NCBI RefSeq assembly: GCF_039654945.1
Contig: NW_027361681.1
Span: 3,720,001 to 3,784,000 of the forward strand
Direction: 5' to 3'
DNA length: 64,000 nt
DNA from: Dendrobates tinctorius
Taxonomy: Eukaryota
Positions 10,881-62,453 of the stretch are shown here, in pieces (positions within the stretch are counted from its first letter, which is position 1; every line of letters starts with the position of its first letter). The notes beneath the pieces are model-generated. The model was given only the letters and a program-made list of their open reading frames with translations, ran no database searches and was not told the origin of the DNA. Position numbers and translations under genes: made by a program.

Positions 10881-11359
10881 GAAACAAAGCTTCATGTGAC
10901 TTGGTGATGACTGTGGACCTGACAGCAGTGGCTCCTGTGACAGGGCCAGTGCTTACAATTGTATTGGGGTCCATATGATAAATTTCTATTGTGCGGCACC
11001 TCTGTGTCCAGTGAGCCGCTGATCCGGACCCTTTGCCCTTTACATTGCTGTAGAGGAGCACTCTCATCATGCACTGGAGGAGCGGGTCCTGCTTTGCATG
11101 TGCTTTGAATGCAGCTGGGCCTGTATTTGGTGTCGTACTCCTCCACTGTGTTTGTGAATATCCTACTCCGGCTGCTACAAGCCTCGTCTTGCCCTAATTA
11201 CACCCTATTCAGAGGCTGCTATTCTTTCTAATGGCGGACAATTAGTAACAACCTGCGCCCTCTGCTCCTTTGTTACACAGGGTGATGACGGGTGTCTGCA
11301 CCTCCGAATATGTCATCGGAGATTACCTTATATTGGATCATATGCAAACAAACTGCAAT

Positions 11360-12480
11360 GTCAGGAGGGCACGAGGTACAGTTGGAAGGGCACTGTCATG
11401 AGGGCATGAGTTACAGTCGAAAGGGCATGGTCACGAGGTACAGTTTGGAGGGCACGATCAGGAGGGCATGAGGTACAGTCAGAAGGGCATCTCTTGAGGG
11501 CACGGTCAGGAGGGCACGAGGTACAGTCTGGAGGGCACAGTCAGGAGAGCACGAGGTACAGTCAGGAGGGCACGAGGTACAGTCGGAAGGGCATGAGGAG
11601 GTACGGTCAGGAGGGCTCGAGGTACGGTCAGTAGGGCGTAAGGAGGTACGGTCAGGAGGGCACAGGGCACATTCAGAAGGGCACAGGGTGCAGTCGTAAG
11701 GGCATGAGGAGGTATGGTCATGAAGGCACGATGTACAGTCAGGAGGGCACAGGGCACATTCAGAAGGGCACAAGGTACAGTCGTAAGGGCATGAGGAGGT
11801 ATGGTCATGAAGGCACGATGTACAGTCAGGAGGGCACAGGGCACATTCAGAAGGGCACAAGGTACAGTCGGAAGGGCATGAGGAGGTACGGTCAGGAGGG
11901 CTCGAGGTACGGTCAGTAGGGCGTAAGGAGGTACGGTCAGGAGGGCACAGGGCACATTCAGAAGGGCACAGGGTGCAGTCGTCAGGGCATGAGGAGGTAT
12001 GGTCATGAAGGCACGATGTACAGTCAGGAGGGCACGGCACATTCAGAAGGGCACAAGGTACAGTCGGAAGGGCATGAGGAGGTACGGTCAGGAGGGCTCG
12101 AGGTACGGTCAGTAGGGCGTAAGGAGGTACGGTCAGGAGGGCACAGGGCACATTCAGAAGGGCACGGTGCAGTCGTAAGGGCATGAGGAGGTATGGTCAT
12201 GAAGGCACGATGTACAGTCAGGAGGGCACAGGGCACATTCAGAAGGGCACAAGGTACAGTCGGAAGGGCATGAGGAGGTATGGTCATGAAGGCACGATGT
12301 ACAGTCAGGAGGGCACAGGGCACATTCAGAAGGGCACAAGGTACAGTCGGAAGGGCATGAGGAGGTATGGTCATGAAGGCACGAGGTACAGTCAGAAGGG
12401 CACAAGGTACAGTTGGAAGGGCATAAGGAGGGGTACGGTCAGGAGGGCACGAGGTACAGTCGGAAAGGCACGGTTAGGAA
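11360..12480. repeat. Complex minisatellite (21-24-bp subunits, 87-bp higher-order unit)
   Basis: CAGGAGGGCACGAGGTACAGT-like subunits; 29-aa periodic ORFs on both strands. Confidence 0.9.
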
Positions 12481-19949: not shown

Positions 19950-21232
19950 GTATCACACGGGAGAGGATTAGATACACGGCTCAGCAGTCAGTATCACACG
20001 GGAGAGGATTAGATACACGGCTCAGCAGTCAGTATCACACGGGAGAGGATTAGATACACGGCTCAGCAGTCAGTATCACACGGGAGAGGATTAGATACAC
20101 GGCTCAGCAGTCAGTATCACACGGGAGAGGATTAGATACATGGCTCAGCAGTCAGTATCACACGGGAGATGATTAGATACACGGCTCAGCAGTCAGTATC
20201 ACACGGGAGAGGATTAGATACACGGCTCAGCAGTCAGTATCACACAGGATAGGATTAGATACATGGCTTAGCAGTCAGTATCACACAGGATAGGATTAGA
20301 TACATGGCTCAGCAGTCAGTATCACACAGGATAGGAATAGATACACGGCTCAGCAGTCAGTATCACACAGGATAGGATTAGATACACGGCTCAGCAGTCA
20401 CTATCACAGGATAAGATTAGATGCTCAGCACACAGTATCACACATGATGATATTAGATACACGGCTCAGCACACAGTATCACACGGGATAGGATTAGATA
20501 TACAGCTCAGCAGACAGTATCACACAGGATAGGATTAGATACACAGCTCAGCAGTCAGTATCACACAGGATAGGATTAGATACACGGCTCAGCAGGCTGT
20601 ATCACACAGGATAGGATTAGATACACGGCTCAGCACACAGCGTCACACGGGATGGGATTAGATACACGGCTCAGCAGACAGTATCAAACAGGATAGGATT
20701 AGATACACAGCTCAGCAGACAGTATCACACAGGATAGGATTAGATACACGGCTCAGCAGACAGTATCACACAGGATAGGATTAGATACACTGCTCAGCAG
20801 TCAGTATCACACAGGATAGGATTAGATACACGGCTCAGCAGACAGTATCACACAGGATAGGATTAGATACACTGCTCAGCAGTCAGTATCACACAGGATA
20901 GGATTAGATACACGGCTCAGCAGACAGTATCACACAGAATAGGATTAGATACACAGCTCAGCAGACAGTGTCACACAGGATAGGATTAGATACACAGCTC
21001 AGCAGACAGTATCACACAGGATAGGATTAGATACACTGCTCAGCAGACAGTATCACACAGGATAGGATTAGATACACTGCTCAGCAGTCAGTATCACACA
21101 GGATAGGATTAGATACACGGCTCAGCAGACAGTATCACACAGAATAGGATTAGATACACAGCTCAGCAGACAGTGTCACACAGGATAGGATTAGATATAC
21201 AGCTCAGCAGACAGTATCACACAGGATAGGAT
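19950..21232. repeat. 41-bp satellite (CAGTATCACACAGGATAGGATTAGATACACRGCTCAGCAGW), ~31 units
   Basis: Direct tandem array; same family as 52111-62372. Confidence 0.97.
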
Positions 21233-22949: not shown

Positions 22950-23504
22950 ATGGCGGACGCTTCCAAGCTCGAACCAGAGTACGAGTGTCCCGTGTGCTGG
23001 AATCCGTATAACACCACGTTCCGCACTCCCAAACTGCTGAGCTGCCACCACACCTTCTGCGTGGAGTGCCTGGCCCACCTGAGCTTCACCACCCAGGTGA
23101 GGAACCGCCTGCACTGCCCGCTGTGCCGACACACCACAATGCTACGCCTGGACCAGGTGATCACAGATCTTCCCACCAACACTGTCATCCTCGGCCATCT
23201 CAAATTGGAGCCAGAGAAACATGGACTTTCTGCCCAAGACACCCGTAGACTGAACTTCTTCCAGCGTCCCTCCTCGGTTTATACTCTTAACGTTGCCCAG
23301 GACACAGGGTCCTTGTACGGTGCTCAACAAAATCAGGTACCGACTCCCCCGACCACTATTCCCTCTGACAACTCCTCCTGGCAGTGTCTCCGGAACCCCC
23401 AGTTCCGCCTGTTCTCCTACATGATGATGACTATGCTGGTGGTCAGCATGCTACTGATCTTTTCCATTTTCTGGACTCGCAAGCTACTGTGGGGACCAGG
23501 GTGA
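22950..23504 (+). CDS. RNF183: E3 ubiquitin ligase RNF183 (single coding exon, 184 aa)
   Basis: ECPVCWNP.N.TF.TPK.L.C.H.FCVECLAHLS, RNPQFR.F.Y and LLIFSIFWT...LWG.G match mammalian RNF183; syntenic orientation; acceptor AG at 22895-22896. Confidence 0.93.
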   Translation: MADASKLEPEYECPVCWNPYNTTFRTPKLLSCHHTFCVECLAHLSFTTQVRNRLHCPLCRHTTMLRLDQVITDLPTNTVILGHLKLEPEKHGLSAQDTRRLNFFQRPSSVYTLNVAQDTGSLYGAQQNQVPTPPTTIPSDNSSWQCLRNPQFRLFSYMMMTMLVVSMLLIFSIFWTRKLLWGPG

Positions 23505-28788: not shown

Positions 28789-29280
28789 TTAACTGTGCAA
28801 GGAATGTATAACACACTGATAAAGGGGTCACAGGAGGCCCAGAGTGACAGCACGTTGCCCCTGCAGTCCCATAGAAGAGCCTGCAGAATATGGTTTACAG
28901 GAGACACATGGGGATAGGGGAGAAGAAACTGCACTATAGGGGCCACTGGAGAAAAGCCTGCTCTTTAGTGGGCACAAGGACAGTGCAGGAATAGAGCCTG
29001 CCCTATAGTGAGGAGGTACACAAGGACAGTGTAGAGGAAAAGATTCTGCTTCATAAGGTCTACAGGAAACGCATGGTGAGAAGTGAGAAAAGCCTGCTCC
29101 ATAGGGAGCACAAAGACAGTGCACAAAAACAAAAAAATAGGACCCGCAAACCTCAAGTATTAATCTACAGGTGCAAGAAAACACTAAGTGGCCAATATAC
29201 AGACACATACATACACGATACGTCAGCACAAAGCAACTGAATACAAAAACTCCAATATTGCAGAAAAACATTAAAAACGT

Positions 29281-29355
29281 AAAGTTACTTAGCAGTTTTT
29301 GATCAAAGAATGCAAAAGCCATCCAACCACGTCAAGGTGACCTTTTCATATTGAC
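29281..29355 (-). ncRNA. Candidate HDV-like ribozyme (copy D)
   Basis: P3 ACC/GGU, L3 UUGACGU, P1 GUCAA/UGGAU, then GG, a P4 hairpin, J4/2 GCUAA and a degenerate P2; manual fold only. Confidence 0.45.
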
Positions 29356-29686
29356 AGTCTCTAAACACTAAATATCTTGCCTTTCTAGGAGCCAAAATAG
29401 CCTCATGTGAACGAGGTGTGAAAAGGAAACCAGGCATACAGTAGCTCTCAATTGAAACCTTATTTGAGGAAGATAGGTGGACATGGGTGCTGAACCCTGG
29501 AGGGGGCCACCACCCAACCCCCCAATATGTACTATACATAAAAGATAAATAGGACCTTTAATACCTTTGGTATTAAATTAATGCACAGGTGCACAAAGAC
29601 GCTATGTGGCCACATCACTACCATACACACGATATGTCAGCACACTGCGACTAATGAATGAGGCTGTTTTGGAGTTCATGTATTAA

Positions 29687-30207
29687 AGTGCACTTGTTTT
29701 GGCCACTATAAGATGTGGCTGCTGCCTTTCAGGGCTTATCTACAGGATTCTATAATGCTGTATATAAGCCCCCAGTCCGACCTGCAAGATAAGAAAAATA
29801 AGTTTTGCTATACTCACCTGGGGGAGGGGGTCCGGGTCCGGCGCCTGCCATCTTGCGATGCCGCCCTGCTGCTTGCTTCCTCGCTCCTGGCATCGCACGT
29901 CTGCGCAGGCGTACTTCTCTGCCCTGTTGAGGGCAGAGCAAAGTTCTGCAGTGCGCAGGGCCTCTGACCTTTGCTGGCACCTGCAGTACTTTGTTCTGCC
30001 CTCAACAGGGCAGAGAAGTACACCTGCGCAGGAGCGTAATGCTGGGAGCGAGGAAGCAAGCAAGAGGGTGGCATCGCAAGAAGATGGGAGGAGCCAGACC
30101 CGGACCTGCGACACCAATCGGGCCGGACCGCCAAAAGCCGGGTGAGTATAATAAACCTTATTTTTCTTCTCTTTCAGTTCAGAACGGAGGCTGGTTACAG
30201 GTTCCCT
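29687..30207. mobile_element. Kolobok/T2-type MITE with long internal palindrome
   Basis: TTAA flanks (29683-29686, 30208-30211); right end ACAGGTTCCCT; ~190-bp arms folding back around ~29965. Confidence 0.75.
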
Positions 30208-30932
30208 TTAATTAGTCACAGTGTTCTAATGCTTCATGTATGTATATGGTAGTGTATTGGCGACATAACATATTTGTGCACCTGTACATTAATTTAATAC
30301 CCAAGGTACGCAGGCCCTATTTTTTTCTTTTTTGTGTAGTACATATTGGGGGGCCGGCCACATAAGTCACAAGGTTGATACAGAAGAACCTTGTCTGGAA
30401 AATATGCGAGAAGTGTGCAGAAAAATAGTACATGAATAGGCATCTGTGCACATCAAGTCCTTTTGTTAGGTTTTCAGAGCAGAAACTTAGACGAAAAAGA
30501 GGGATTTTGGGTTCTTACCGTAAAATCTCTTTCTTGGAGCTTTCATTGGGGGACACAGATTACCATGTGTGTATGCTGCGGCTGCTAGGAGGCTGACACT
30601 ATGCAAAAACAAGAAAATTAGCTCCTCCCTGGCAGTATACACCCACCGACAGGCACCAAGTACCTCAGTTGGTGAGAAAGCAGTAGGAGAAGCAACCAAA
30701 AAACTCTTCAACATATGTACCAACCAAACAGGGGACTCAAAGAGCCAACACGGTCCAACTTAAACAGGGAGGGTGCGTTGTCCCCCAATGAAGGCTCCAA
30801 GAAAGATTTTATGGAAAGAACCCAAAATCCCTCTTTCTTTATCGCTTCATTGGGGGACACAGATTACCATGGGACGTTCCAAAGCAGTCCCGAGGGTGGG
30901 AAAAGCAATAAAGGAACGAAAGGAGGAAGAGC

Positions 30933-32099: not shown

Positions 32100-33729
32100 G
32101 ATTACTGGGATGCCTTCTGACTATCTTCTTGACTACCCTTGGGATCAGGGCAAGGGGAGGAAACAGTTAAGGCAGTCGGAACTGGGACCACGGAAACACC
32201 AGGGCGTCGCAACCGACGGCTAGAGGATCCCTTGACCTGGCTACGAAGAGAGGAACTTTGTTGTTCATCCGAGATGCCATGAGGTCGACGTCCGGGATGC
32301 CCCAACGCTGGCATATCTGATTGAAGACCGAGGGGTGAAGGGACCATTCGCCTGACACTAGACCCTGGCGACTTAGGAAGTCGGCTGCCCAAATCTCCAC
32401 CCCTGGAATGTGAACGGCGGAGATCGCCGGAACGTGACGCTCTGCCCAACACAGTATCTTTGCCACTTCTGACATTACCTGCTTGCTGTGAGTACCGCCC
32501 TGGTGGTTAATGTATGCCACGGCCGTGGCGTTGTCTGATTGACTGCGGACTGGTTTGCCTACGAGGAGAGGCTGCCAACGGAGGAGAGCAAGAAAAATTG
32601 CTCTGATTTCCAGAAGGTTGATGGGAAGAAGAGTCTCCTGGGTGTTCCAGCGCCCTTGGGCCGTTTTCCACTGGAAAACCGCCCCCCATCCTAGGAGACT
32701 GGCATCGGTGGTGATGACTTGCCACTGAGGCGGAAGAAAGGACCTTCCCTGGAGAACTGACGCCGCAAATGTCCACCAAGTCAGCAATTGCCTTACTCTG
32801 AGCAGAAGGAGAATGGGAAGGTCCAGAGAAAGTGAGGTCTTGTCCCAGACTGAAAGGATGAACTGCTGGAGAGGGCGAGTATGAAATTGTGCGAAAGGCA
32901 CTGCTTCCATGGAAGCTATCATCTTTCCCGGGACCCTCATGCAGGACCGAAGGGGAATGGGCTCTGAGCGTTTTATGGATCGGATTCCCTTGCAAAGAGC
33001 CGAAAATTTGTCCTTCGGAAGAAACACCCGGGCTCGATTCGTGTCGAATTCCATGCCCAGAAACGTCAGACGCTGAGCAGGGTGCAGGATGGACTTCTCT
33101 TTGTTGACTATCCATCCGAGGCGGCCGAAAGTATTCAGGCTTATCTGAAGACAGTCTTGGCGGGACGAGCCCTTGATCAAGAGGTCGTCCAGATAAGGGA
33201 TGATGAGAATCCCCCTGGAGCGAAGAATAGCCATGACTGTAGCCATCACCTTCGTAAATACCCGGGAAGCGGAAGCTAGGCCGAAGGGGAGGGCCGTGAA
33301 CTGATAGTGGTTCACCTGAATCGCAAAGCGGCGATATCTCTGATGTTGCAAACACACAGGAATGTGAAGATATGCATCCTGTATGTCCACAGAACAGAGA
33401 AACTCCCCGGGTTCCATTGAGGCCATCACCGAGCGCAGGGACTCCATCTTGAAGTGGAGGATCCTTACGTGGCGGTTGAGCAACTTGAGGTCCAAGATTG
33501 GACGAAGGGAGCCTTTTTTGGGAACTACGAAAAGATTCAAGTAGAACCCTGAAAACCGTTCGTTTGAAGGAACGGGGACGATAACTCCGGCGGAAAGAAG
33601 GGAGGAAACGGCTTGAAAAAACCCTGGAATTTGGGACTGCTGTCTTGGTGATCGCGACAGGAAGAAGCGCCTGTTTGGGGGGGAGGGGGGGAATTTGATA
33701 TGTATCCGGACATGATTTCCCTGACCCAA
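32100..33729 (-). pseudogene. DIRS reverse transcriptase/RNase H/methyltransferase-like ORF
   Basis: LRPILDLK, LPFGL, YLDD, TTDASLLGWG, SDNATAVAYIN, ADFLSR, DLMAS; premature stop at 32167 inside the MT-like domain. Confidence 0.92.
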
Positions 33730-40843: not shown

Positions 40844-43800
40844 CTGAAGATAAAAACAATCCACTATAAGTGGGATCCAGTGTAATATAACCACTGTGCA
40901 ATGCAGCTTCATGCAGTCTAATGCTTCATCATTTTATGCTGAAAAGCAAGTTCCTAATAAATCTTGTGTTACCTGCACTGATGCATTGCAGCAAACGATC
41001 AGAACAAGAGAAAGTAGTGCTGCTGATGTTCATAGCTCAGAAATAAATATGTGAACTGATATAGAGCAGGAAAGCCATCAGCTGGGAGTTTTCACTATTA
41101 ATTTACAACAAGCGGTGATCTTGAAATGGTACAGAAAGTTTATAAGTAACTCGTTGTACAATGACTGAATGGAAATGCAAGGAATTATACAATTTTCCCC
41201 TGCCCACATATTGCTGAGTTTACAGTTATTTTTCAGAGCTGCACTCACTATACTGATAGTGCAGTCAATGTGTACACACTGTCACGGGTTTACCGCAACA
41301 GAGAAGCCAGGAGACCACAGTGTCTGATTTCTCCATACTCCTGCACTGATTAGAAGTACTTCATCATATTGAACAGTGCAGGATTAATCTACTCATTTGA
41401 GAGAGCCTGGAGATTTCCTGCTTTGATGATCTCAGCTGTTCAGTGTTGGCCACTCCCCTATGCTATACATACTTGCCTTTAGAAATCAGGGATTGTCAGA
41501 GTTAGTTTCATACTGCCTTGTTCTGAAGTTAGAGGTGTTGGTTGTTTGGGAAAGCATTGGGAGTCTTGTTCAGAAGACTTACTTTGTGATTTGTCTGTGT
41601 GAATATCCTCATCCTCTCCTATTTTTTTTTTTTTTTGGTTTATCCTCGTTCTCTCATATTTGGTTTTCATTCATTTACTTCCCGATGTTCAACTCTGTTA
41701 TCTGAGTGCATATCTGTATGATTGGTATTTTCATTTATCCCTGTATGTCCTCCCTTGTTAGTCTGGTTTGTGTATTCTTATACATCATTACTCCCCACCT
41801 CCCTGGGCTGATTTAGGAGCTCAGCAAGGCATGTAGCCCTGGCGTCTTCACAATCAGAAGTAATGGGATGTCCTGCAACAGTGCCATGACATTAACTCTG
41901 GCCAAACAATTTTTTTTTATCCATCACAGATACTATTACTGCTCTTGTAGGGCAACTGCAGCAACTCAGCCTGAAGGTGGCAGACCTACGCACTGTTTCT
42001 ATTTTAGCATCCAAACATCTGGTTTTAGGGACTGCAACTCCCAGGCAGCCCCAGATGTAGCTCAAGATCGTTTTGCTCAACAGGTTCTCTGGGAGGCAAC
42101 ACAAGTTTGTTGTTTGCAGGAGTCATGTGTGCTATATTTTAAATTACATCCTCACTCCTCAGGAGAAGCAATGGGTGGGGATCGCAATTTCTCTCCTTCA
42201 GGCTGACTCCCAAGTTTGAGCATTTTCTCTCCGTGCAAACCCAGTCTCTTTGGACGGTTGAGGAATTTTTTTTTCATGTGCTGGTTCATATATATCGCGA
42301 CTCCCTGGCCAAGTCTATTCTATGTCAGCTTCGGCAGGGAGACCAGCCGGTGGACAAGTATTGCTCCGAGTTCCGGGGGTGGTCCACCAAATACTAGGTG
42401 GAACGACCCTGTGCTCTGTAGCCAGTTCTGACAAGGGCTATCAGTAAGGGTTAAGGATGCCTTTGCTCTGCATGAGACTCGGGTTTCCCTTGAGGCGGCC
42501 ATGTCTATGGCAATCCGTGTGGACCACAGTGTTCGCCAGAGACATAAAGAGACACTCCAATTTTCGGGAAAGTCGGTGTCAAGGGAAACTAGGTCTGAGT
42601 CAACTGAGGAACCCATGCAGTTGGGTGAGGCAGCACATTCTGTTGGTCCAACTGTAGTTTGGTGTAAAGGGGCGAGTGTTTCTTTGTGGGTGCTTGTCCT
42701 CCCTTAACCCACCATAAACAGCTGCCGGAAAACGAAAAAGCCCGTTTGAGGGGAGGTTGGCAACCCGGGTGTACATATTTCCTCTGTGGGTAGGTCACAA
42801 TTTTATTTTACTTTTTATTAGCGTAGATCCATCTGGGCAAACAAAAGTGGTCATTTCAGCCTCTCTGGCCATTGTGGTGGGGTTTAATTTGATCGTTAGG
42901 TTCATCCAGGTCCTCAAACCATATACACTGTCCAGACCTATACCCATAAACACCATCAACTCTGCACCCTTGAGACAGTCGTATTTTACTCAAGCCATCC
43001 AAGGGTTACATCTATATGTAGGGGCCATGCACTAAGAAAGTATTAACTGTTATGTGTTAGAGCGTCGGCCTTCTCCTGTGGTTCTTGGGCTTAGCTAACT
43101 CTGCACCACCCTGTGGTAGATTGTCAGATTCAGGAGTTCTTAAAGTGGAGTGAGTATTGTCAAGGACACTGCTTGGGCACCTGGCTAGCCAGGGTGAGTA
43201 CCCAATCTCTGCCTGAATACCTGTCTGACTTTGGGGATGTTTTCAGAACAGGGGTGTCAAGAACTCCCCTCCTCATCGTTCTTATACGATTGCGCCATTA
43301 ATTTTATACCTGGGGCCAAGCTGCCAAAGAGCAGACTATATAATATCTCTGTTCCAGAGAGACCATCGCTGAAAGTCTGGCAAAGGGCCATATCAAACAG
43401 TCTTCATCTCCCATTACTGCGGGGTTTTGCTTTGTAAAGAAGAAAGATTATAGGTATGGGATCCATATCCTCACACCCCGGAAAACTTTAACCAGATTGT
43501 AGGAGCAAAATGGCTTTCTATACTGAATATCAGGGGGGCGTATAATCTCATTTGTATTAAAAAAGGGGAATGAGTGGAAGACAGCCTTCAATGCACCTGA
43601 GGGACACTATGAGAACCTTGTGATTCTATTTGGGTTGACAAAAGCTCCCGCCGTCTTTCAGCACTTTGTAAATGACATCTAGTCACCTGGTAGGTAGATT
43701 TGTGGTAATCTATCTTGATGACATATTAATTTATTCACCTGACCTCAAGTCACATCAGGTACATGTCAGGCAGGTTTTACAGATACTTGGAGACAAATTA

Positions 43801-46455
43801 TTTGTGAAACCAGAGAAGTGCATGTTCTCGGTTCAGGAGATCCTTTTTCTAAGTTATTACTTATTGTTCACTGATTTTTGCATGGATCTGGCAAAAGTCC
43901 AGGTGGTACTGGGATTATAATCGTCCTGAGGACTTTACAAAAGTTGTTTGGTTTCGCCAACTACTACCGAGAGTACATCAAAAACTTTTCAGTAGTGGCC
44001 AAACCTTTGACGGATAGAGATCAGGAAAGGAATGGATTTTTCCAAGTGATCCAGTCAGGCCAGCGAGGCACTTAATATCTTGAAAAGATGTTTTGCATCT
44101 GTACAGATTCTTATACAGCCGGACGACACTCAGCCATTTTTTGTAGAAGTTGATGCGTCTGAAGTGGGGGTTGTATTGTTGCATGGTGCATCTCCTGGTA
44201 AATGGTGTCTGTGTGCATATTTTTCTAAGAAATGGTCTTCCACTGAGAAAAACTATGACTTTGCTAATAGGGAACTATTGGCAATGAAGTTGGCTTTTGA
44301 AGAGTGTCGTTATTTTCTCGAAGAAGCAGTTCATCTGGTCAAGGTAATAACTGATCATAAAGATCTTTTATATCTTGAATCTTCCAAGTGTCTGACACCT
44401 AGACAGGCAAGATGGACACTGTTCTTCACCAGATTCAACTTTTTTGTCACATATAGGCCGGCGGGGTATAAAAACCATTAAGGCAGATGCCTTATCTCGT
44501 TTTCCTGGGGGTGGAGATAATTGTGAACCAGTTCCTATACTACAGAAAGGGGTGGTTAGTGCTGCTTTAAGTTCTGACCTTCAGAAAGAGGTTGCTGAGG
44601 CTCAGGGTGACACCCATACTACCTGTTCGTTAGGTAAACTGTTTGTTCCTGTAAATCTCCGTCTTAAGTTTTGAGCGAACATCATGATTTGGTCTTGGCC
44701 GGACAACCTGGTAATAAAGTCACTACAGATCTCCTTACCCAGCATTTTTGGTAGTTTGGGGTACATCAGGATGTCCGGGAGTATGTGCACATTCTAAAAC
44801 CTCTCATACTCATCCATCAGGGTCTCTCCACCCATTGGTGATTCACAGTCTACCTTGGACTCATTTATCGGTAGATTTCATCACAGATCTACCAATATCT
44901 TCAGGTAACACTGTACTTTTGGTGGTAATGGACAGATTCAGCAAGATGTCTCATTTCATTCTGCTACCAGCTTTACCCAATGCCAAGACGTTGGGGCAAA
45001 TTATCAGCAAATTGTGACATTACATGGGATTCCTACAGCGGGGGGTGCAATTTATTCCCAAATTTTGGAGGGCATTTTGCACTCATTTGGGGATCCATCT
45101 GTCGTTTTCTTCAGCCTTAAATCCACAGTCTAATGGGCAAACAACTTGTAAACCAAAAATTTGAAACTTATCTTAGGATCTTTGTGTCTAAGAATCAGGA
45201 AAAATGGGTTACTTACATACATCTAGCTGAATTTGCTGTAAATAATAGTTGTCATGAGTCTACTGGTAAGTCCCCATTTTTCGGGGCATATGGGTTTCAT
45301 CTTCAGTTCATCTCATTTAATAGAAATCGTCCTGCTGGATTACCTGAAGAGGAACAGTTTTCATCATCAATTATGTCTGTGTGGCATGGAGTTATTGATA
45401 ACTTTAAGAGGATGGGGTCCAAAGAGAGTGGCTGATCGGAGATGTTTGGTTGGTCTGGACCTGTGTGATGGTGATTTAGTGCAGTTGTCCTCGAGGAACA
45501 TTAAAAGTTGAAGGTTCCTTTTTAGAAACTGGGTCCCAGGGTCATCGGTCACTAAAAGATTGTGACTGTCAATCCCGCCTTACTTTGCCACCCACTTTTA
45601 GGATTCATAATGTGTTTCACCAGTCTCTGCTCCAAAAAATATGTTGTGTCCTCTGAACCATCATCATCACCACCTCCATCTCCAATCAGTCTTGATGTGA
45701 ATTTGAAATTTGAGATTGCTAAGATCATTGATTCTTGCTTGGTTCCTCGGTCTCTTCAGTATCTGGTACACTGGAAGGGATACAGTCCTGAAAAAGAGGA
45801 CATGGGTAACAGAATTTTATGTTCATGTGATCAGGTTGATCTGGTCTTTTCACGCGGAACACCATGATGGACCTCAGGGGCGAGTCTCTTAGAAGGGGGG
45901 TACTGTCATGGGTTTACCATGACAAAGAGGAGCCAGAAGACCGCAGCGTCTGATTTCTCCTATTCCTGCACTGGTTAGGAGCACTTCATCATCATATTAA
46001 ACAGAGCAGTTTTCTGCTAGCGGTACAGGGATTAATCTGTTCAGTTGAAGCTCCTGGTACTGTCTCAGCTGTTCAGTGTTGGCCACTCCACTATATATTC
46101 GCGCCTCTGGCAATCAGGGATTGCCAGTGTTAGTTTCGTACTGCATGGTTCTGGAGATTGAATGTGCTGGTTGTTTGAGGAAGCATTGGGAGAGCTGTTC
46201 AGAAGACTTTTGCTTGGTGATTTGTCTGTGTGCATATCCTCATCTTCTCCTATTTGGTTTTTCCTTCCTTTACGTCCCAGTGTTCCACTCTGTTTGTGAG
46301 TGCATATTTATATGATTGGTAATTTCATTTACCCCTGTACATCTTCCCTTGTTACACAAAGAAAAAACACAGTATGACAAACGTGCAAAACTACTCTGTG
46401 GTAAAAAAATATAACAGTAGACAGCAAGTGCTAGTAAAAAATGGTAACAAAAACA

Positions 46456-46535
46456 GGGTATTTAGTTGATACGTTTTTTGCAAGAAATGTATACTAAGCC
46501 ACTCCACCAACGTCACGGTATACCCATCTCGTAGC
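46456..46535 (-). ncRNA. Candidate HDV-like ribozyme (copy C)
   Basis: GCUAC-GAGAU-GGGUAU-ACC-GUGACGUU-GGU-GGAGU-GG-P4-CUAA-AUACCC; manual fold. Confidence 0.5.
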
Positions 46536-46688
46536 AATCCTATCTAATGTATTTAAAACCTGATCATGTGAACAGTACCTATATGAGCAGGATTCAGAAA
46601 GGCGCTTCTTATGTGGGCACGCTGTGTAAGACGGCTCTTTATGTGCGTGTCACACAAGAGGGGGGGGGTAAATACATTAGATAGGACT

Positions 46689-46768
46689 GCTCCGAGATGG
46701 GTATACCGTGACGTTGGTGGAGTGACTTATGTTTTTTGCAAAAAATGTATGCTATCAACTAAATACCC
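46689..46768 (+). ncRNA. Candidate HDV-like ribozyme (copy A)
   Basis: P1 GCUCC/GGAGU, P2 GGGUAU/AUACCC, P3 ACC/GGU, J4/2 CUAA; manual fold. Confidence 0.5.
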
Positions 46769-47103
46769 TGTTTTTGTTGTTTTTTACGAGCACTTGCTGT
46801 CTACTGTTATATTTTTTACAACAGTATTTTTGCACGTTTGTCATACTGTGTTTTTTCGTGTTTCAGTCTTTGGGTGGTGTGAACACTGTCCAACCGATCT
46901 ATTCATTTTTGTGCGCGTCACATGTGTTTTTAATCTATTAGTTCTTTGCTCATGCAAGTTTTGGGAGTTTCCCTCCCCTCTCGTGTGACACGCACATAAA
47001 GAGCCGTCTTACACAGCGTGCCCACATCAAAAAGCGCCTTTCTGAATCCTACTCATATAGGTACTGTTCACATGATCAGGTATTAAATACATTAGATAGG
47101 ACT

Positions 47104-47182
47104 GCTCCGAGATGGGTATACCGTGACATTGGTTGAGTGGCTTAGTATACATTTTTGCAAAAAACGTATCAACTAAATACCC
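47104..47182 (+). ncRNA. Candidate HDV-like ribozyme (copy B)
   Basis: Same fold with L3 and P1' substitutions. Confidence 0.45.
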
Positions 47183-47551
47183 TGCTTTTCTTATCATGTT
47201 TTACTAGCACTTGCTGTTATATTTTTTACAACAGAGTATTTTTGCACGTTTGTCATATTGGGTTTTTGCTTTGTGTTTCAGTCTTTGGGTGGTGTGAACA
47301 CTGTCCAACCGACCTGTTCATTTTTGTGCGTGTCACATGTTTTTAATCTTCCCTTGTTAGTCTGGTTTGTGTGTTCTTACACACTACAACTCCCCTCTTC
47401 CCTGGGTTTGGAGGAGGGGGACAGATATAGGGCCGATTCAGGAGGTTAGCAAGGCACGTGGCCATGGTATCTTCACTATCTGAAGTAATCTTGAGAGCAG
47501 AGAGGGCGCCCCTAGCTCTGGGATATCCTGCAACAGTGCCGTGACACACAC

Positions 47552-49874: not shown

Positions 49875-51648
49875 AAGGTCAGGGGTCTCCGGCAGCTATC
49901 AGGTCAGTGGGCCTCCGGCTGGCGGCAGCTATCAGTTCAGGGGGCCGACGGCCGCTATCAGGTCAGGGGGCCGACGGCAGCTATCAGGTCAGGGGGCCGA
50001 CGGCAGCTATCAGGTCAGGGGGCCGACGGCAGCTATCAGGTCAGGGGGCCGACGGCAGCTATCAGGTCAGGGGGCCGACGGCAGCTATCAGGTCAGGGGG
50101 CCGACGGCAGCTATCAGGTCAGGGGGCCGACGGCAGCTATCAGGTCAGGGGGCCGACGGCAGCTATCAGGTCAGGGGGCCGACGGCAGCTATCAGGTCAG
50201 GGGGCCGACGGCAGCTATCAGGTCAGGGGGCCGACGGCCGCTATCAGGTCAGGGGGCCGACGGCCGCTATCAGGTCAGGGGGCCGACGGCCGCTATCAGG
50301 TCAGGGGGCCGACGGCAGCTATCAGGTCAGGGGGCCGACGGCAGCTATCAGGTCAGGGGGCCGACGGCAGCTATCAGGTCAGGGGGCCGACGGCAGCTAT
50401 CAGGTCAGGGGGCCGACGGCCGCTATCAGGTCAGGGGGCCGACGGCCGCTATCAGGTCAGGGGGCCGACGGCCGCTATCAGGTCAGGGCCGGGCCGACGG
50501 CAGCTATAAGGTCAGGGGGCCGACGGCAGCTATAAGGTCAGGGGGCCGACGGCAGCTATAAGGTCAGGGGGCCGACGGCAGCTATAAGGTCAGGGGGCCT
50601 CTGGCTCGCGGCAGCTATAAGGTTAGGGGGCCTCTGGCTCGCGGCAGCTATAAGGTTAGGGGGCCTCTGGCTCGCGGCAGCTATAAGGTCAGGGGGCCTC
50701 TGGCTCGCGGCAGCTATAAGGTCAGGGGGCCTCTGGCTCGCGGCAGCTATAAAGTTAGGGGGCCTCTGGCTCGCGGCAGCTATAAGGTCAGGGGGCCTCT
50801 GGCTCGCGGCAGCTATAAGGTCAGGGGGCCTCTGGCTCGCGGCAGCTATAAGGTCAGGGGGCCTCTGGCTCGCGGCAGCTATAAGGTCAGGGGGCCTCTG
50901 GCTCGCGGCAGCTATAAGGTCAGGGGGCCTCTGGCTCGCGGCAGCTATAAGGTCAGGGGGCCTCTGGCTCGCGGCAACTATAAGGTTAGGGGGCCTCTGG
51001 CTCGCGGCAGCTATAAGGTCAGGGGGCCTCTGGCCGGGGGCAGCTATAAGGTCAGGGGCCTCTGGCTCACGGCAGCTATAAGGTTAGGGGGCCTCTGGCT
51101 CGCTGCAGCTATAAGGTCAGGTGGCCTCTGGCTGGCGGCAGCTATAAAGTTAGGGGGCCTCTGGCTGGCGGCAGCTATAAGGTTAGGGGGCCTCTGGCCG
51201 GGGGCAGCTATAAGGTCAGGGGCCTCTGGCTCACAGCAGCTATAAGGTTAGGGGGGCTCTGGCTCGCTGCAGCTATAAGGTCAGGGGGCCTCTGGCTGGC
51301 GGCAGCTATAAGGTTAGGGGGCCTCTGGCTGGCGGCAGCTATAAGGTCAGGGGGCCTCCGGCGGGGGGCAGCTATAAGGTTAGGGGGCCTCTGGCTCGCG
51401 GCAGCTATAAGGTCAGGGGGCCTCTGGCTGGCGGCAGCTATAAGGTTAGGGGGCCTCTGGCTGGCGGCAGCTATAAGGTCAGGGGGCCTCCGGCGGGGGG
51501 CAGCTATAAGGTTAGGGGGCCTCTGGCTCGCGGCAGCTATAAGGTCAGGGGGCCTCTGGCTGGCGGCAGCTATAAGGTCAGGGGGCCTCCGGCGGGGGGC
51601 AGCTATAAGGTCAGGGGACCTCCGGCGGGGGGCAGCTATAAGGTTAGG
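49875..51648. repeat. GC-rich tandem array: 26-bp unit switching to a related 33-bp unit
   Basis: GCTATCAGGTCAGGGGGCCGACGGCA to ~50580, then GCTATAAGGTYAGGGGGCCTCTGGCTCGCGGCA. Confidence 0.97.
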
Positions 51649-52110: not shown

Positions 52111-55100
52111 AGCTCAGCAGAGATATTATACACGATAGGATTAGATACACAGCTCAGCAGACAGTATCCCACAGGAGAGGATTAGATACACAGCTCAGCA
52201 GACATTATCACACAGGATAGGATTAGATACATGGCTCAGCACACAGTATCACACAGGATAGGATTAGATACACAGCTCAGCAGACAGTATCACACAGGAT
52301 AGGATTAGATACACGGCTCAGCACACAGTATCACACAGGATAGGATTAGATACACAGCTCAGCACACAGTATCACACAGGATAGGATTAGATACACGGCT
52401 CAGCAGTCAGTATCACACAGGATAGGATTAGATACACGGCTTAGCAGTCAGTATCACACAGGATAGGATTAGATACACAGCTCAGCACACAGTATCACAC
52501 AGGATAGGATTAGATACACGGCTCAGCAGTCAGTATCACACAGGATAGGATTAGATACACAGCTTAGCAGTCTATCACACAGGATAGGATTAGATACACG
52601 GCTCAGCAGGCAGTATCACACAGGATAGGATTAGATACTCAGCTCAGCAGTCAGTATCACACAGGATAGGATTAGATACACAGCTTAGCAGTCAGTATCA
52701 CACAGGATAGGATTAGATACACAGCTTAGCAGTCAGTATCACACAGGATAGGATTAGATACTCAGCTCAGCAGTCAGTATCACACAGGATAGGATTAGAT
52801 ACACAGCTCAGCAGTCAGTATCACACAGGATAGGATTAGATACACAGCTCATCAGACAGTATCCCACAGGATAAGGTTAGATACACAGCTCAGCAGACAG
52901 TATCCCACAGGATAGGATTAGATACACAGCTCAGCAGACAGTATCCCACAGGATAAGATTAGATGCACAGCTCAGCAGACAGTATCACACAGGATAGGAT
53001 TAGATACACAGCTCAGCAGACAGTATCACACAGGATAGGATTAGATACACAGCTCAGCAGTCAGTATCACACAGGATAGGATTAGATACACAGCTCAGCA
53101 GACAGTATCACACAGGATAGGATTAGATACACAGCTCAGCAGACAATATCACACAGGATAGGATTAGATACATGGCTCAGCACACAGTATCACACAGGAT
53201 AGGATTAGATACACAGCTCAGCACACAGTATCACACAGGATAGGATTAGATACACAGCTCAGCAGACAGTATCACACAGGATAGGATTAGATACACAGCT
53301 CAGCAGACAGTATCACACAGGATAGGATTAGATACTCAGCTCAGCAGTCAGTATCACACAGGATAGGATTAGATACTCAGCTCAGCAGTCAGTATCACAC
53401 AGGATAGGATTAGATACACAGCTTAGCAGTCAGTATCACACAGGATAGGATTAGATACACAGCTTAGCAGTCAGTATCACACAGGATAGGATTAGATACT
53501 CAGCTCAGCAGTCAGTATCACACAGGATAGGATTAGATACACAGCTCAGCAGTCAGTATCACACAGGATAGGATTAGATACACAGCTCATCAGACAGTAT
53601 CCCACAGGATAAGGTTAGATACACAGCTCAGCAGACAGTATCCCACAGGATAGGATTAGATACACAGCTCAGCAGACAGTATCCCACAGGATAAGATTAG
53701 ATACACAGCTCAGCAGACAGTATCCCACAGGATAGGGTTAGATACACAGCTCAGCAGACAGTATCACACAGGATAGGATTAGATACACAGCTCAGCAGTC
53801 AGTATCACACAGGATAGGATTAGATACACAGCTCAGCAGACAGTATCACACAGGATAGGATTAGATACACAGCTCAGCAGACAATATCACACAGGATAGG
53901 ATTAGATACATGGCTCAGCACACAGTATCACACAGGATAGGATTAGATACACAGCTCAGCAGTCAGTATCACACAGGATAGGATTATATACACAGCTCAT
54001 CAGACATTATCACACAGGATAGGATTAGATACACGGCTCAGCAGACAGTATCACACAGGATAAGATTAGATACACGGCTCAGCAGACTGTATCACACAGG
54101 ATAGGATTAGATACACGGCTCAGCAGACAGTATCACACAGGATAGGATTAGATACACAGCTCAGCAGTCAGTCTCACACAGGATAGGATTAGATACACGG
54201 CTCAGCAGTCAGGATCACACAGGATAGGATTAGATACACAGTTCAGCAGACTATCACACAGGATAGGAGTAGATGCACGGCTCAGCAGACAGTATCACAG
54301 GATAGGATTAGATACATGGCTCAGTAGACAGTATCACACAGGATAGGATTAGATACATGGCTCAGCAGACTATCACACAGCATAGGATTAGATACACAGC
54401 TCAGCAGACAGTATCACATAGGATAAGATTAGATACACAGCTCAGCAGTGTCACACAGGATAGGATTAGTTACACAGCTCAGCAGCCAGTATCACACAGG
54501 ATAGGATTATATACACAGCTCAGCAGACAGTATCATACAGGTTAGGATTAGATACACGGCTCAGCAGACAGTATCACACAGGATAGGATTAGATACACGG
54601 CTCAGCAGACTGTATTACACAGGATAGGATTAGATACACGGCTCAGCAGACAGCATCACACAGGATAGGATTAGATACACGGCTCAGCAGACAGTATCAC
54701 ACAGGATAAGATTAGATACACGGCTCAGCAGACAGTATCACACAGGATAGGATTAGATACACAGCTCAGCAGTCAGTATCACACAGGATAGGATTAGATA
54801 CTCAGCTCAGCAGTCAGTATCACACAGGATAGGATTAGATACACAGCTCAGCAGTCAGTATCACACAGGATAGGATTAGATACACAGCTCAGCAGACATT
54901 ATCACACAGGATAGGATTAGATACACGGCTCAGCAGACAGTATCACACAGGATAAGATTAGATACACGGCTCAGCAGAGTGTATCACACAGGATAGGATT
55001 AGATACACGGCTCAGCAGACAGTATCACACGGGATAGGATTAGATACACAGCTCAGCAGTCAGTCTCACACAGGATAGGATTAGATACACAGCTCAGCAG

Positions 55101-58100
55101 TCAGTGTCACACAGGATAGGATTATATACACAGCTCAGCAGACAGTATCACACAGGATAGGATTAGATACACAGCTCAGCAGTCAGTATCACACAGGATA
55201 GGATTATATACACAGCTCAGCAGACATCACACAGGATAGGATTAGATACACGGCTCAGCAGACTATCACACAGGATAAGATTAGATACACGGCTCAGCAG
55301 ACTGTATCACACAGGATAGGATTAGATACACGGCTCAGCAGACAGTATCACACAGGATAGGATTAGATACACGGCTCAGCAGACAGTATCACACAGGATA
55401 GGATTAGATACACAGCTCAGCAGTCAGTCTCACACAGGATAGGATTAGATACACAGCTCAGCAGTCAGTATCACACAGGATAGGATTATATACACGGCTC
55501 AGCAGACAGTATCACACAGGATAAGATTAGATACACGGCTCAGCAGACAGTATCACACAGGATAGGATTAGATACACAGCTGAGCAGTCAGTCTCACACA
55601 GGATAGGATTAGATACACGGCTCAGCAGTCAGGATCACACAGGATAGGATTAGATACACAGTTCAGCAGACTATCACACAGGATAGGATTAGATGCACGG
55701 CTCAGCAGACAGTATCACAGGATAGGATTAGATACATGGCTCAGTAGACAGTCTCACACAGCATAGGATTAGATACACAGCTCAGCGGACAGTATCACAT
55801 AGGATAAGATTAGATACACAGCTCAGCAGTGTCACACAGGATAGGATTAGTTACACAGCTCAGCAGCCAGTATCACACAGGATAGGATTATATACACAGC
55901 TCAGCAGACAGTATCATACAGGTTAGGATTAGATACACGGCTCAGCAGACAGTATCACACAGGATAGGATTAGATACACGGCTCAGCAGACTGTATTACA
56001 CAGGATAGGATTAGATACACGGCTCAGCAGACAGTATCACACAGGATAGGATTAGATACACAGCTGAGCAGTCATTGTCACACAGGATAGGATTAGATAC
56101 ACGGCTCAGCAGTCAGTATCACACAGGATAGGATTAGATACACAGCTCAGCAGTCAGTATCACACAGGATTAGATACACAGGTCAGACAGTATCACACAG
56201 GATAGGATTAGATACACAGCTCAGCAGTCAGTATCACACAGGAGTGGATTAGATACACAGCTCAGCAGACAGTATCCCACAGGATAAGATTAGATACACA
56301 GCTCAGCAGACAGTATCACACAGGATAGGATTAGATACACAGCTCAGCAGACAGTATCACACAGGATAGGATTAGATACACGGCTCAGCAGACAGTATCA
56401 CACAGGATAGGATTAGATACACGGCTTAGCAGTCAGTATCACACAGGATAGGATTAGATACACAGCTTAGCAGTCAGTATCACACAGGATAGGATTAGAT
56501 ACACAGCTTAGCAGTCAGTATCACACAGGATAGGATTAGATACTCAGCTCAGCAGTCAGTATCACACAGGATAGGATTAGATACACAGCTCAGCAGTCAG
56601 TATCACACAGGATAGGATTAGATACACAGCTCATCAGACAGTATCCCACAGGATAAGGTTAGATACACAGCTCAGCAGACAGTATCCCACAGGATAGGAT
56701 TAGATACACAGCTCAACAGACAGTATCCCACAGGATAAGATTAGATACACAGCTCAGCAGACAGTATCCCACAGGATAGGGTTAGATACACAGCTCAGCA
56801 GACAGTATCACACAGGATAGGATTAGATACACAGCTCAGCAGTCAGTATCACACAGGATAGGATTAGATACACAGCTCAGCAGACAGTATCACACAGGAT
56901 AGGATTAGATACACAGCTCAGCAGACAATATCACACAGGATAGGATTAGATACATGGCTCAGCACACAGTATCACACAGGATAGGATTAGATACACAGCT
57001 CAGCAGACAGTATCCCACAGGATAGGATTAGATACACAGCTCAGCAGACAGTATCACACAGGATAGGATTAGATACACAGCTCAGCAGACAGTATCACAC
57101 AGGATAGGATTAGATACTCAGCTCAGCAGTCAGTATCACACAGGATAGGATTAGATACTCAGCTCAGCAGTCAGTATCACACAGGATAGGATTAGATACA
57201 CAGCTTAGCAGTCAGTATCACACAGGATAGGATTAGATACACAGCTTAGCAGTCAGTATCACACAGGATAGGATTAGATACTCAGCTCAGCAGTCAGTAT
57301 CACACAGGATAGGATTAGATACACAGCTCAGCAGTCAGTATCACACAGGATAGGATTAGATACACAGCTCATCAGACAGTATCCCACAGGATAAGGTTAG
57401 ATACACAGCTCAGCAGACAGTATCCCACAGGATAAGATTAGATACACAGCTCAGCAGACAGTATCCCACAGGATAGGGTTAGATACACAGCTCAGCAGAC
57501 AGTATCACACAGGATAGGATTAGATACACAGCTCAGCAGTCAGTATCACACAGGATAGGATTAGATACACAGCTCAGCAGACAGTATCACACAGGATAGG
57601 ATTAGATACACAGCTCAGCAGACAATATCACACAGGATAGGATTAGATACATGGCTCAGCACACAGTATCACACAGGATAGGATTAGATACACAGCTCAG
57701 CAGTCAGTATCACACAGGATAGGATTATATACACAGCTCATCAGACATTATCACACAGGATAGGATTAGATACACGGCTCAGCAGACAGTATCACACAGG
57801 ATAAGATTAGATACACGGCTCAGCTGACTGTATCACACAGGATAGGATTAGATACACGGCTCAGCAGACAGTATCACACAGGATAGGATTAGATACACAG
57901 CTCAGCAGTCAGTCTCACACAGGATAGGATTAGATACACGGCTCAGCAGTCAGGATCACACAGGATAGGATTAGATACACAGTTCAGCAGACTATCACAC
58001 AGGATAGGAGTAGATGCACGGCTCAGCAGACAGTATCACAGGATAGGATTAGATACACGGCTCAGCAGACAGTATCACACAGGATAGGATTAGATACACA

Positions 58101-61100
58101 GCTGAGCAGTCATTGTCACACAGGATAGGATTAGATACACGGCTCAGCAGTCAGTATCACACAGGATAGGATTAGATACACAGCTCAGCAGTCAGTATCA
58201 CACAGGATTAGATACACAGGTCAGACAGTATCACACAGGATAGGATTAGATACACAGCTCAGCAGTCAGTATCACACAGGAGTGGATTAGATACACAGCT
58301 CAGCAGACAGTATCCCACAGGATAAGATTAGATACACAGCTCAGCAGACAGTATCACACAGGATAGGATTAGATACACAGCTCAGCAGACAGTATCACAC
58401 AGGATAGGATTAGATACACGGCTTAGCAGACAGTATCACACAGGATAGGATTAGATACACGGCTTAGCAGTCAGTATCACACAGGATAGGATTAGATACA
58501 CAGCTTAGCAGTCAGTATCACACAGGATAGGATTAGATACACAGCTTAGCAGTCAGTATCACACAGGATAGGATTAGATACTCAGCTCACCAGTCAGTAT
58601 CACACAGGATAGGATTAGATACACAGCTCAGCAGTCAGTATCACACAGGATAGGATTAGATACACAGCTCATCAGACAGTATCCCACAGGATAAGGTTAG
58701 ATACACAGCTCAGCAGACAGTATCCCACAGGATAGGATTAGATACACAGCTCAACAGACAGTATCCCACAGGATAAGATTAGATACACAGCTCAGCAGAC
58801 AGTATCCCACAGGATAGGGTTAGATACACAGCTCAGCAGACAGTATCACACAGGATAGGATTAGATACACAGCTCAGCAGTCAGTATCACACAGGATAGG
58901 ATTAGATACACAGCTCAGCAGACAGTATCACACAGGATAGGATTAGATACACAGCTCAGCAGACAATATCACACAGGATAGGATTAGATACATGGCTCAG
59001 CACACAGTATCACACAGGATAGGATTAGATACACAGCTCAGCACACAGTATCCCACAGGATAGGATTAGATACACAGCTCAGCAGACAGTATCACACAGG
59101 ATAGGATTAGATACACAGCTCAGCAGACAGTATCACACAGGATAGGATTAGATACTCAGCTCAGCAGTCAGTATCACACAGGATAGGATTAGATACTCAG
59201 CTCAGCAGTCAGTATCACACAGGATAGGATTAGATACACAGCTTAGCAGTCAGTATCACACAGGATAGGATTAGATACACAGCTTAGCAGTCAGTATCAC
59301 ACAGGATAGGATTAGATACTCAGCTCAGCAGTCAGTATCACACAGGATAGGATTAGATACACAGCTCAGCAGTCAGTATCACACAGGATAGGATTAGATA
59401 CACAGCTCATCAGACAGTATCCCACAGGATAAGGTTAGATACACAGCTCAGCAGACAGTATCCCACAGGATAGGATTAGATACACAGCTCAGCAGACAGT
59501 ATCCCACAGGATAAGATTAGATACACAGCTCAGCAGACAGTATCCCACAGGATAGGGTTAGATACACAGCTCAGCAGACAGTATCACACAGGATAGGATT
59601 AGATACACAGCTCAGCAGTCAGTATCACACAGGATAGGATTAGATACACAGCTCAGCAGACAGTATCACACAGGATAGGATTAGATACACAGCTCAGCAG
59701 ACAATATCACACAGGATAGGATTAGATACATGGCTCAGCACACAGTATCACACAGGATAGGATTAGATACACAGCTCAGCAGTCAGTATCACACAGGATA
59801 GGATTATATACACAGCTCATCAGACATTATCACACAGGATAGGATTAGATACACGGCTCAGCAGACAGTATCACACAGGATAAGATTAGATACACGGCTC
59901 AGCTGACTGTATCACACAGGATAGGATTAGATACACGGCTCAGCAGACAGTATCACACAGGATAGGATTAGATACACAGCTCAGCAGTCAGTCTCACACA
60001 GGATAGGATTAGATACACGGCTCAGCAGTCAGGATCACACAGGATAGGATTAGATACACAGTTCAGCAGACTATCACACAGGATAGGAGTAGATGCACGG
60101 CTCAGCAGACAGTATCACAGGATAGGATTAGATACATGGCTCAGTAGACAGTATCACACAGGATAGGATTAGATACATGGCTCAGCAGACTATCACACAG
60201 CATAGGATTAGATACACAGCTCAGCAGACAGTATCACATAGGATAAGATTAGATACACAGCTCAGCAGTGTCACACAGGATAGGATTAGTTACACAGCTC
60301 AGCAGCCAGTATCACACAGGATAGGATTATATACACAGCTCAGCAGACAGTATCATACAGGTTAGGATTAGATACACGGCTCAGCAGACAGTATCACACA
60401 GGATAGGATTAGATACACGGCTCAGCAGACTGTATTACACAGGATAGGATTAGATACACGGCTCAGCAGACAGCATCACACAGGATAGGATTAGATACAC
60501 GGCTCAGCAGACAGTATCACACAGGATAAGATTAGATACACGGCTCAGCAGACAGTATCACACAGGATAGGATTAGATACACAGCTCAGCAGTCAGTATC
60601 ACACAGGATAGGATTAGATACTCAGCTCAGCAGTCAGTATCACACAGGATAGGATTAGATACACAGCTCAGCAGTCAGTATCACACAGGATAGGATTAGA
60701 TACACAGCTCAGCAGACATTATCACACAGGATAGGATTAGATACACGGCTCAGCAGACAGTATCACACAGGATAAGATTAGATACACGGCTCAGCAGAGT
60801 GTATCACACAGGATAGGATTAGATACACGGCTCAGCAGACAGTATCACACGGGATAGGATTAGATACACAGCTCAGCAGTCAGTCTCACACAGGATAGGA
60901 TTAGATACACAGCTCAGCAGTCAGTGTCACACAGGATAGGATTATATACACAGCTCAGCAGACAGTATCACACAGGATAGGATTAGATACACGGCTCAGC
61001 AGACAGTATCACACAGGATAAGATTAGATACACGGCTCAGCAGACTGTATCACACAGGATAGGATTAGATACACGGCTCAGCAGACAGTATCACACAGGA

Positions 61101-62372: not shown

Positions 62373-62453
62373 GAGACCTGGTAGGGGTAGTTATTTTCTA
62401 GTTGTAGTACTCTGCTGTATACTAACAGCTCTTCCCTCTCTGTAGTTTATAAG

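Follow-up and report, generated by a model that had tools for sequence, protein, structure and literature searches.

The segment 29125-30353 of the 64,000-nt window (the whole stretch of DNA analysed, which is repeat-rich vertebrate DNA) is genuine repeat DNA, non-coding and read on the minus strand. We give about an even chance to its being an old, non-coding frog repeat of the Penelope type, similar to the 'non-LTR retrozymes', from a family that has a delta-like module. We read that family as hammerhead-free, with a delta-like, probably structured RNA module. The copy described here looks dead: one P1 pair is mismatched, P2 has collapsed, the internal repeats differ by 15-28%, and the copy drifts like its flank.

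Layout and boundaries of the repeat

A module of about 115-150 nt is present three times in 29125-30353 (a2, a and a'), as seen directly by repeat finding, self-BLAST and three-way alignment, and 1.28 units of a ~415-nt repeat form the end of the direct arm. The parts of the repeat, and the relative with which it is compared, are as follows.

29125-29240, minus strand: a2, a partial second copy of the module, forming the 3' end of the direct arm and adjoining single-copy flank (direct repeats D2/D3, depth step)
29241-29517 (277 nt), minus strand: y, the interior of the ~415-nt unit, present once and holding the 10-mer GUUCACAUGA and the core
29518-29658, minus strand: a, the full module copy in the direct arm (repeat finding, self-BLAST, three-way alignment)
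29698-30210, strand unassigned: centre of the palindrome, a very abundant hairpin repeat (inverted repeats I1, I3 and I6, and depth of 1e4-3e5)
30208-30353, plus strand: a', the inverted module copy, whose own 3' end (..CATATTGGGGGG) is the right boundary
46354-47345, plus strand: the relative used for comparison, made up of 1.6 tandem 415-nt units and an inverted partial unit; ATCTTCCCTTGTTA stands at both flanks, and the core occurs three times

The a2 copy and 29540-29655 are direct repeats at a spacing of 414-418, with 72-85% identity, while a' is inverted relative to a and 78% identical to it, so that 29518-30353 is an 836-bp near-palindrome with its axis at about 29966. Read on the minus strand, the inverted arm (30353 to 29981) and the direct arm (29951 to 29125) are joined head to head. 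Outward, both arms stop at one and the same position in the ~150-nt 3' module, and depth beyond is single-copy (5.7 in the left flank). The core at 29281-29360 is single within the repeat, and self-BLAST found no second copy of y in the window. An earlier note on this DNA had described a 412-418-bp direct repeat with an inverted copy, laid out as at 46355-47345. The spacing and the inverted copy are both there, but only the ~115-150-nt module is repeated, the core is single rather than present in every unit as at 46.3 kb, and the inverted copy is one arm of a palindrome with a different repeat in its centre.

The boundaries are also visible in the depth of contigs from four public runs, placed on 28900-30600 at 80% likeness and available as contig summaries. 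Single-copy depth (5.7, run X1) holds to 29127 and climbs to 20-110 from 29128. It amounts to 20-230 across a2 and y, rises to 160-550 in a and a', and reaches 1e4-3e5 over 29698-30210, against 20-300 elsewhere in the element and 5.7 in the single-copy flank. The palindrome centre is therefore either a very abundant hairpin repeat of another kind, foreign to the ~415-nt unit, or a separate element with the same 3' module; a simple tandem template gives no account of it. Rfam returned only microRNA-hairpin-like noise over the centre, far below gathering scores. This GC-rich long hairpin has summed depths of 1e4-3e5 in three organism labels (single copy ~6-10), which places it among the most abundant repeats in these genomes, and its consensus continues to the left of 29725, where the present copy is only ~66% alike. 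Another very abundant repeat (30496-30600, depth ~1e5) starts ~140 nt beyond the right end of the element and is strong in X14, possibly an RNA run, as well (depth 600-3000). The single-copy left flank has short, imperfect direct repeats with a unit of ~39 nt (GAGAAAAGCCTGCTC...GACAGTGCA; 28920-29123, three copies that are 62-87% alike, at distances of 29 and 136 nt), which reach the element boundary.

In Penelope-like elements and their non-autonomous derivatives, a partial tandem is accompanied by an adjacent, inverted, 5'-truncated copy (PMC8557442), and the amphibian non-LTR retrozymes belong to such derivatives and carry hammerheads (10.64898/2026.07.22.740005; PMC7761336). At 29125-30353, the partial tandem takes the form of pseudo-LTR-like direct repeats, though of only 1.28 units, and an inverted, 5'-truncated copy lies beside the 5' end (30208-30353 relative to 29518-29658). 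The variable-length target-site duplication of Penelope elements is absent, as a comparison of 29080-29145 with 30320-30400 gave nothing above chance. The repeated unit also lacks the hammerhead of retrozymes: no CUGANGA box occurs on either strand, and Rfam is blank for hammerheads at E<=10. We read the element as decayed, Penelope-type and hammerhead-free because of its layout, the outer ends at the same module, a unit length equal to that of its relative and the lack of a hammerhead box.

The closest known systems are the animal non-LTR retrozymes (Cervera & de la Pena 2020, PMC7229834; Li, Clavereau & Pollet 2026, 10.64898/2026.07.22.740005), which share with this repeat short non-coding units (170-540 nt), partial tandems with an adjacent inverted 5'-truncated copy, amphibian hosts and one small conserved RNA module per unit. 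In contrast, they carry type I hammerheads, of which 29125-30353 has none on either strand, and the present element differs further in its 1.28 units, the lack of a detectable target duplication and its foreign-looking hairpin centre. The 836-bp near-palindrome with repeated modules in its arms also recalls foldback or long-hairpin repeats; however, the arms end at a retroelement-like 3' module with no terminal duplication, and the module-to-interior junction is common to a non-palindromic relative, the 46-kb element. A pair of blocks, CATATTGGG ... TTGGGTGGTG, crosses the a/y junction and spans the same point in the 46-kb element; this junction is therefore native and not the edge of a foldback element.

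Several other features of the window were recorded. The strong AT skew at 52-62 kb is due to a 41-bp satellite at 52111-62377 (252 copies, 92% matches), of which a second block lies at 19950-21232 (31 copies, 93%). Side by side at 49923-51648 are two GC-rich minisatellites, whose units measure 26 bp and 33 bp (~26 and ~33 copies, 92-97% matches); a complex tandem array with nested periods of 21, 66, 87 and 196 bp lies at 11358-12472, where an overlapping 257-aa frame is probably a repeat artefact. A 184-aa open frame with a RING-type zinc finger (22950-23504, plus strand, E 8e-8) is possibly an exon of a host gene. The sole reverse-transcriptase remnant in the window is of LTR type: a 520-aa open frame (32167-33729, minus strand) in a GC-rich block (32-36 kb) matches RVT_1 (E 2e-15) and, weakly, RT_RNaseH, and is an LTR-retroelement-type remnant, not a Penelope-like one.

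A distant relative at 46 kb and the delta-like core

The repeat is likely to be a decayed and distant relative of the 46-kb family, which itself has a 14-bp target duplication. Both elements have a spacing of ~415. A collinear chain alignment of the two units, with cheap long gaps, scores 77, compared with 48+-6 for shuffles (max 76) and 39+-8 for 300 random window pieces (max 61), and no control in either set reaches 77 (0/300). Three exact 10-mers are common to both units (GUUCACAUGA, TTGCTTTGTG and TTGGGTGGTG; ~0.18 expected), along with three 9-mers, and collinear blocks of y are shared with 46940-47360. The homology is weak: plain local alignment of the 46-kb unit with 29125-30353 is at chance level (26 vs 21+-2.6), and an nhmmer profile from the three 46-kb copies found no match there. 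The core taken by itself shows no significant likeness to the 46-kb element. The proposal of a diverged family member 17 kb from the 46-kb element is thus borne out, as is the shared upstream 10-mer GUUCACAUGA (29412 to 29403, and 47066-47075). The similarity had been said to lie mainly in the ribozyme-like core, which does not hold, since the two other 10-mers (TTGCTTTGTG and TTGGGTGGTG) and the 9-mers fall outside it; conservation between the elements is patchy along the whole unit.

The core, for which 'HDV-like ribozyme' is a hypothetical label, comprises the following parts, listed together with the 10-mer upstream of it and all on the minus strand.

29281-29360: delta-like core (direct reading, covariance-model match, pair counts, depth)
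29357/29355 to 29351: P1, 5' strand
29345 to 29339: P2, 5' strand
29338 to 29336, and 29328 to 29326: P3 and P3', ACC/GGU
29335 to 29329: L3, UUGACGU
29325 to 29321 (to 29319 in the 7-bp register): P1, 3' strand
29318 to 29293: P4 region
29292 to 29289: J4/2, CUAA
29288/7 to 29281: P2, 3' strand
29403-29412: 10-mer GUUCACAUGA, an exact match to 47066-47075, lying 47 nt upstream of this core, the distance at the 46-kb site being 27 nt

The string given in the earlier note reads as described from 29360 to 29281, including P3, L3 and J4/2. P1 pairs as it stated (GUCAA/UGGAU: G.U, U-A, C-G, A.G, A-U), and P2 is indeed degenerate, with two of six pairs in register or five of seven with a one-base slip. 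P1 has four of five pairs, or six of seven in the long register, with the A.G mismatch. Also present is a rival hairpin, in which GUCAA pairs perfectly with the UUGAC of L3.

The likeness to the HDV-like ribozymes of retrotransposons (R2, RTE, L1Tc) and of CPEB3 (PMC3774820, PMC3185411; descriptor PMC4870747) lies in the helix order P1-P2-P3-L3-P3'-P1'-J1/4-P4-J4/2-P2', a 3-bp P3, a 7-nt L3 with U first and CG at positions 5-6, and CUAA directly before P2'. However, those ribozymes occur singly, either in an intron or at the 5' end of autonomous LINEs. The present core also differs in the third base of L3 (G, where every described member has a pyrimidine), in its AU-rich, weak stems, in the lack of an Rfam match, and in P1.1, the pairing of L3 positions 2-3 with J1/4, which is absent or, if P1 is 7 bp and opens with C-G, a single flipped G-C pair.

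Delta-like descriptors were taken from the RNArobo supplement (PMC4870747), coded and run on the window. The published descriptor found nothing in the window; when two L3 mismatches were allowed, it found two of the three 46-kb copies and one unrelated locus. The present copy passes only with one mispair in P1, two in P2 and one L3 mismatch, at which setting seven unrelated loci in 128 kb pass as well. P3 is a 3-bp Watson-Crick helix, as the descriptor has it, and the J4/2 cytosine stands in CNRA directly before P2', here and in all three 46-kb copies. The L3 rule UYYHCG(N)Y is broken by the G at the third position of UUGACGU, and in the 46-kb copies by two mismatches. P1 (5-7 bp) and P2 (6-7 bp) are free of mispairs, as published, in the 46-kb copies c1 and c3, and not in this copy.

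A covariance model, R1, was built from the three 46-kb cores with P1 as 7 bp, P3 and P4, leaving P2 out. Its best non-self full-length match is 29281-29360 (15.2 bits, E~0.1, with rough E-values from a short calibration), and an unrelated locus scored 13.0 bits; the second-best match, 43691-43776, has neither repeats nor the motif and was rejected as chance. The nested folding energy of the core equals that of shuffles (z +0.25) and is uninformative. Rfam gave no match in 29125-30353 at gathering score, and no delta-ribozyme match on either element at E<=10. By-eye candidates for tRNA/SINE-type A and B boxes were also rejected, as the A-box-like string of the 46-kb copies is not conserved in 29125-30353. 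Taken alone, the fold match of 29281-29360 is at chance level.

P1 can be extended by two pairs to 7 bp (CUG or CCA with UGG) in this copy, in the 46-kb element and in the third family member described below, the usual length in delta ribozymes (5-7 bp in the descriptor, PMC4870747). The 5-bp register opens with G29355.U29321, where the abundant relative described below has A-U, and it has GG as J1/4 and no standard P1.1 pair. In the 7-bp register, the opening pair is C-G, J1/4 is CU, and the G at L3 position 3 pairs with the first J1/4 base, C, beside a U.U, an arrangement of P1.1 that we take to be that of CPEB3 with the C-G pair flipped. Active delta-like ribozymes tolerate varied P1.1 pairs, C75U being dead and G25A impaired (PMC13635239).

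Paired changes, copy number and age

Pairs were counted on the model-fitted alignment for P1, P3 and P2, the last written as a pseudoknot outside the model. The counts give 87.5% of stem cells paired, against 34-47% with partners slid. Five pairs are changed on both sides between the two elements (P1 columns 7-40, 8-39 and 10-37, together with the pairs at both ends of P2), a total reached in 3 of 500 shuffles, while slid controls gave 0-1; compensatory base changes, as the earlier note had claimed, are present. This copy no longer forms the four inner pairs of P2, nor one pair of P1. As P2 lay outside the model, its two both-side changes were not fitted. The choice of P1 partner was not free, since the 5' strand of P1 begins in each element at a GACUG conserved between them. 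By our own arithmetic, at least three of four further pairs at fixed positions have a probability of 0.05-0.15.

A third family member is represented by two 30-letter loose ends of one contig, read on the minus strand and compared by hand only. The contig comes from X14, possibly an RNA run, where it has a depth of 342; it matches 29296-29339 and carries 29323 C>G. Its flanks beyond the match are unlike, and by this hand reading of the minus strand they are homologous to the present copy. Its P2, AGGUAC/GUACCU, forms six of six pairs at homologous columns and, compared with the 46-kb GGGUAU/AUACCC, has both end pairs changed on both sides (two compensatory changes). The P2 of the present copy is this helix, spoiled by one deletion and one substitution. 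P1 of the third member (AUCCG/UGCAU, or CCAUCCG/UGCAUGG) has C-G where this copy has A.G, along with a C.C mismatch of its own, and GUUA replaces the CUAA of both window elements, so that the putative catalytic cytosine is gone. The variant 29323 C>G has a depth of 342 of 365 in the possible RNA run X14 and 19 of 3270 in the DNA run X1, a ~30-fold over-representation that hints at transcription. Whether P2 and the A.G mismatch are restored in relatives, a check suggested earlier, has a divided answer: both are in the third member, but neither is among the majority variants listed for the ~50 closest paralogs, where the one change among the variants listed is 29347 C>A, in J1/2.

A sharp peak in depth lies inside y, with a bin mean of 2104 at 29299-29355 against 30-230 around it (80% likeness). 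Depth is ~3270 at 29323, ~326 at 29347 and 30-84 beyond, a peak of 10-25 fold over the centre of the core at that likeness. About 44 nt of the core (P3, L3, P1 3' strand and P4; 29296-29339) are therefore common, at >=80% likeness, to roughly tenfold more copies than the rest of the unit. Longer paralog contigs are 82-86% identical across 29289-29438 and diverge after. A peak of conservation at the core, as expected earlier, is seen in the contig depth of paralogs and not in the pairwise alignment, which is patchy throughout. The core, taken as a 23-mer with one N, had no match among metagenome contigs. The left junction is crossed by a contig from a second organism label (28901-29195) with ~96% identity in flank and element alike, which indicates that the insertion is old and that the copy is drifting like its flank.

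The earlier note had invoked selection on RNA structure across subfamilies. The evidence suggests such selection at the family level and not at this copy, with its P1 mismatch and collapsed P2. On balance, we lean slightly towards the module being a conserved RNA structure; self-cleavage of intact relatives, as ribozymes of the delta-like kind, is possible, though we doubt it.

Alternative readings and significance

The best-surviving alternative, which we consider unlikely, is a conserved RNA structure that does not cleave, for example a recognition or priming signal for reverse transcriptase, or an element stabilising the transcript. In its favour are the covarying helices, in the pair counts and in the third member, the broken delta L3/P1.1 rule, the C-G opening pair of the 7-bp register and an abundant relative that retains P2 without the J4/2 cytosine. 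P4 is moreover conserved in sequence over the 44-nt block of high depth, uncommon for the P4 of a ribozyme. Yet the helix order, 3-bp P3, 7-nt L3 with U..CG, CNRA before P2' and 7-bp P1 all coincide with the delta fold, and related hammerhead-bearing repeats place their ribozyme at the equivalent site (PMC7761336; 10.64898/2026.07.22.740005).

Still less probable is a chance patchwork, in which a foldback hairpin element lies beside a neighbouring decayed fragment and the core, a by-eye match to a permissive motif, has no RNA role. The chance-level local alignment, blank nhmmer search, covariance-model E~0.1 with an unrelated match 2 bits lower, seven unrelated loci passing the same relaxed descriptor and folding z ~0 are all as it would have them, as are ends without a duplication and a centre made of a different, hugely abundant repeat. 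What speaks against it is a chain score above 300 of 300 controls, the three exact 10-mers and the ~415 spacing shared by both elements, the conserved GACUG at the 5' start of P1, P2 end pairs that are compensatory though outside the model, and a third member whose P2 is intact at homologous columns. Least probable is a DNA-level signal, the core being an internal promoter or enhancer needed by each retrotransposed copy: TGACGT is the longest invariant string between the two families, the depth peak covers the block with TGACGTGG, and the TGACGT(GG) of this most conserved block resembles a CRE/UPRE-type bZIP site. Penelope pseudo-LTRs are reported to hold a promoter and start site (PMC8557442), but such a signal leaves unaccounted for both the both-side changes in P1 and P2 and the G.U pairs, which are A.C on the other strand.

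Under the preferred reading, a Penelope-type repeat whose family has a delta-like module, the ~80-nt module, one per unit, is most likely a family-level pseudoknotted RNA with the order P1, P2, P3, P4 and a cytosine in J4/2. The RNA function, cleavage, circles and mobilising enzyme that we infer for the family would then fit together as follows. Multimeric transcripts of intact relatives would cut themselves just 5' of P1, and a Penelope-like reverse transcriptase, primed from both strands of the target, would turn the unit-length RNAs back into DNA, with the inverted-plus-tandem layout as the outcome. We found no paper describing delta-like ribozymes in Penelope-type or non-LTR-retrozyme repeats.

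A more far-reaching version, which we hold only tentatively and think improbable as a whole, is a frog superfamily of Penelope-mobilised 'delta retrozymes' with ~500 copies carrying the core. Here the hammerhead would have been replaced by a self-cleaving, undescribed delta-like subtype (a flipped J1/4 base pairing with a purine at L3 position 3, and a 7-bp P1 opening C-G), at least one member would be abundantly transcribed, and the present locus would be a subfamily fossil.

This copy alone adds little. Its worth is as a diverged comparison sequence, in a comparison weaker than the by-eye impression. If intact relatives do cut themselves, the Penelope type of retrozyme would not be bound to hammerheads, and this retroelement lifestyle would have been combined with a small ribozyme class for a second, independent time. 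The present search rules for delta-like ribozymes, with a pyrimidine at L3 position 3 and a G.U opening pair, would in that case be too narrow.
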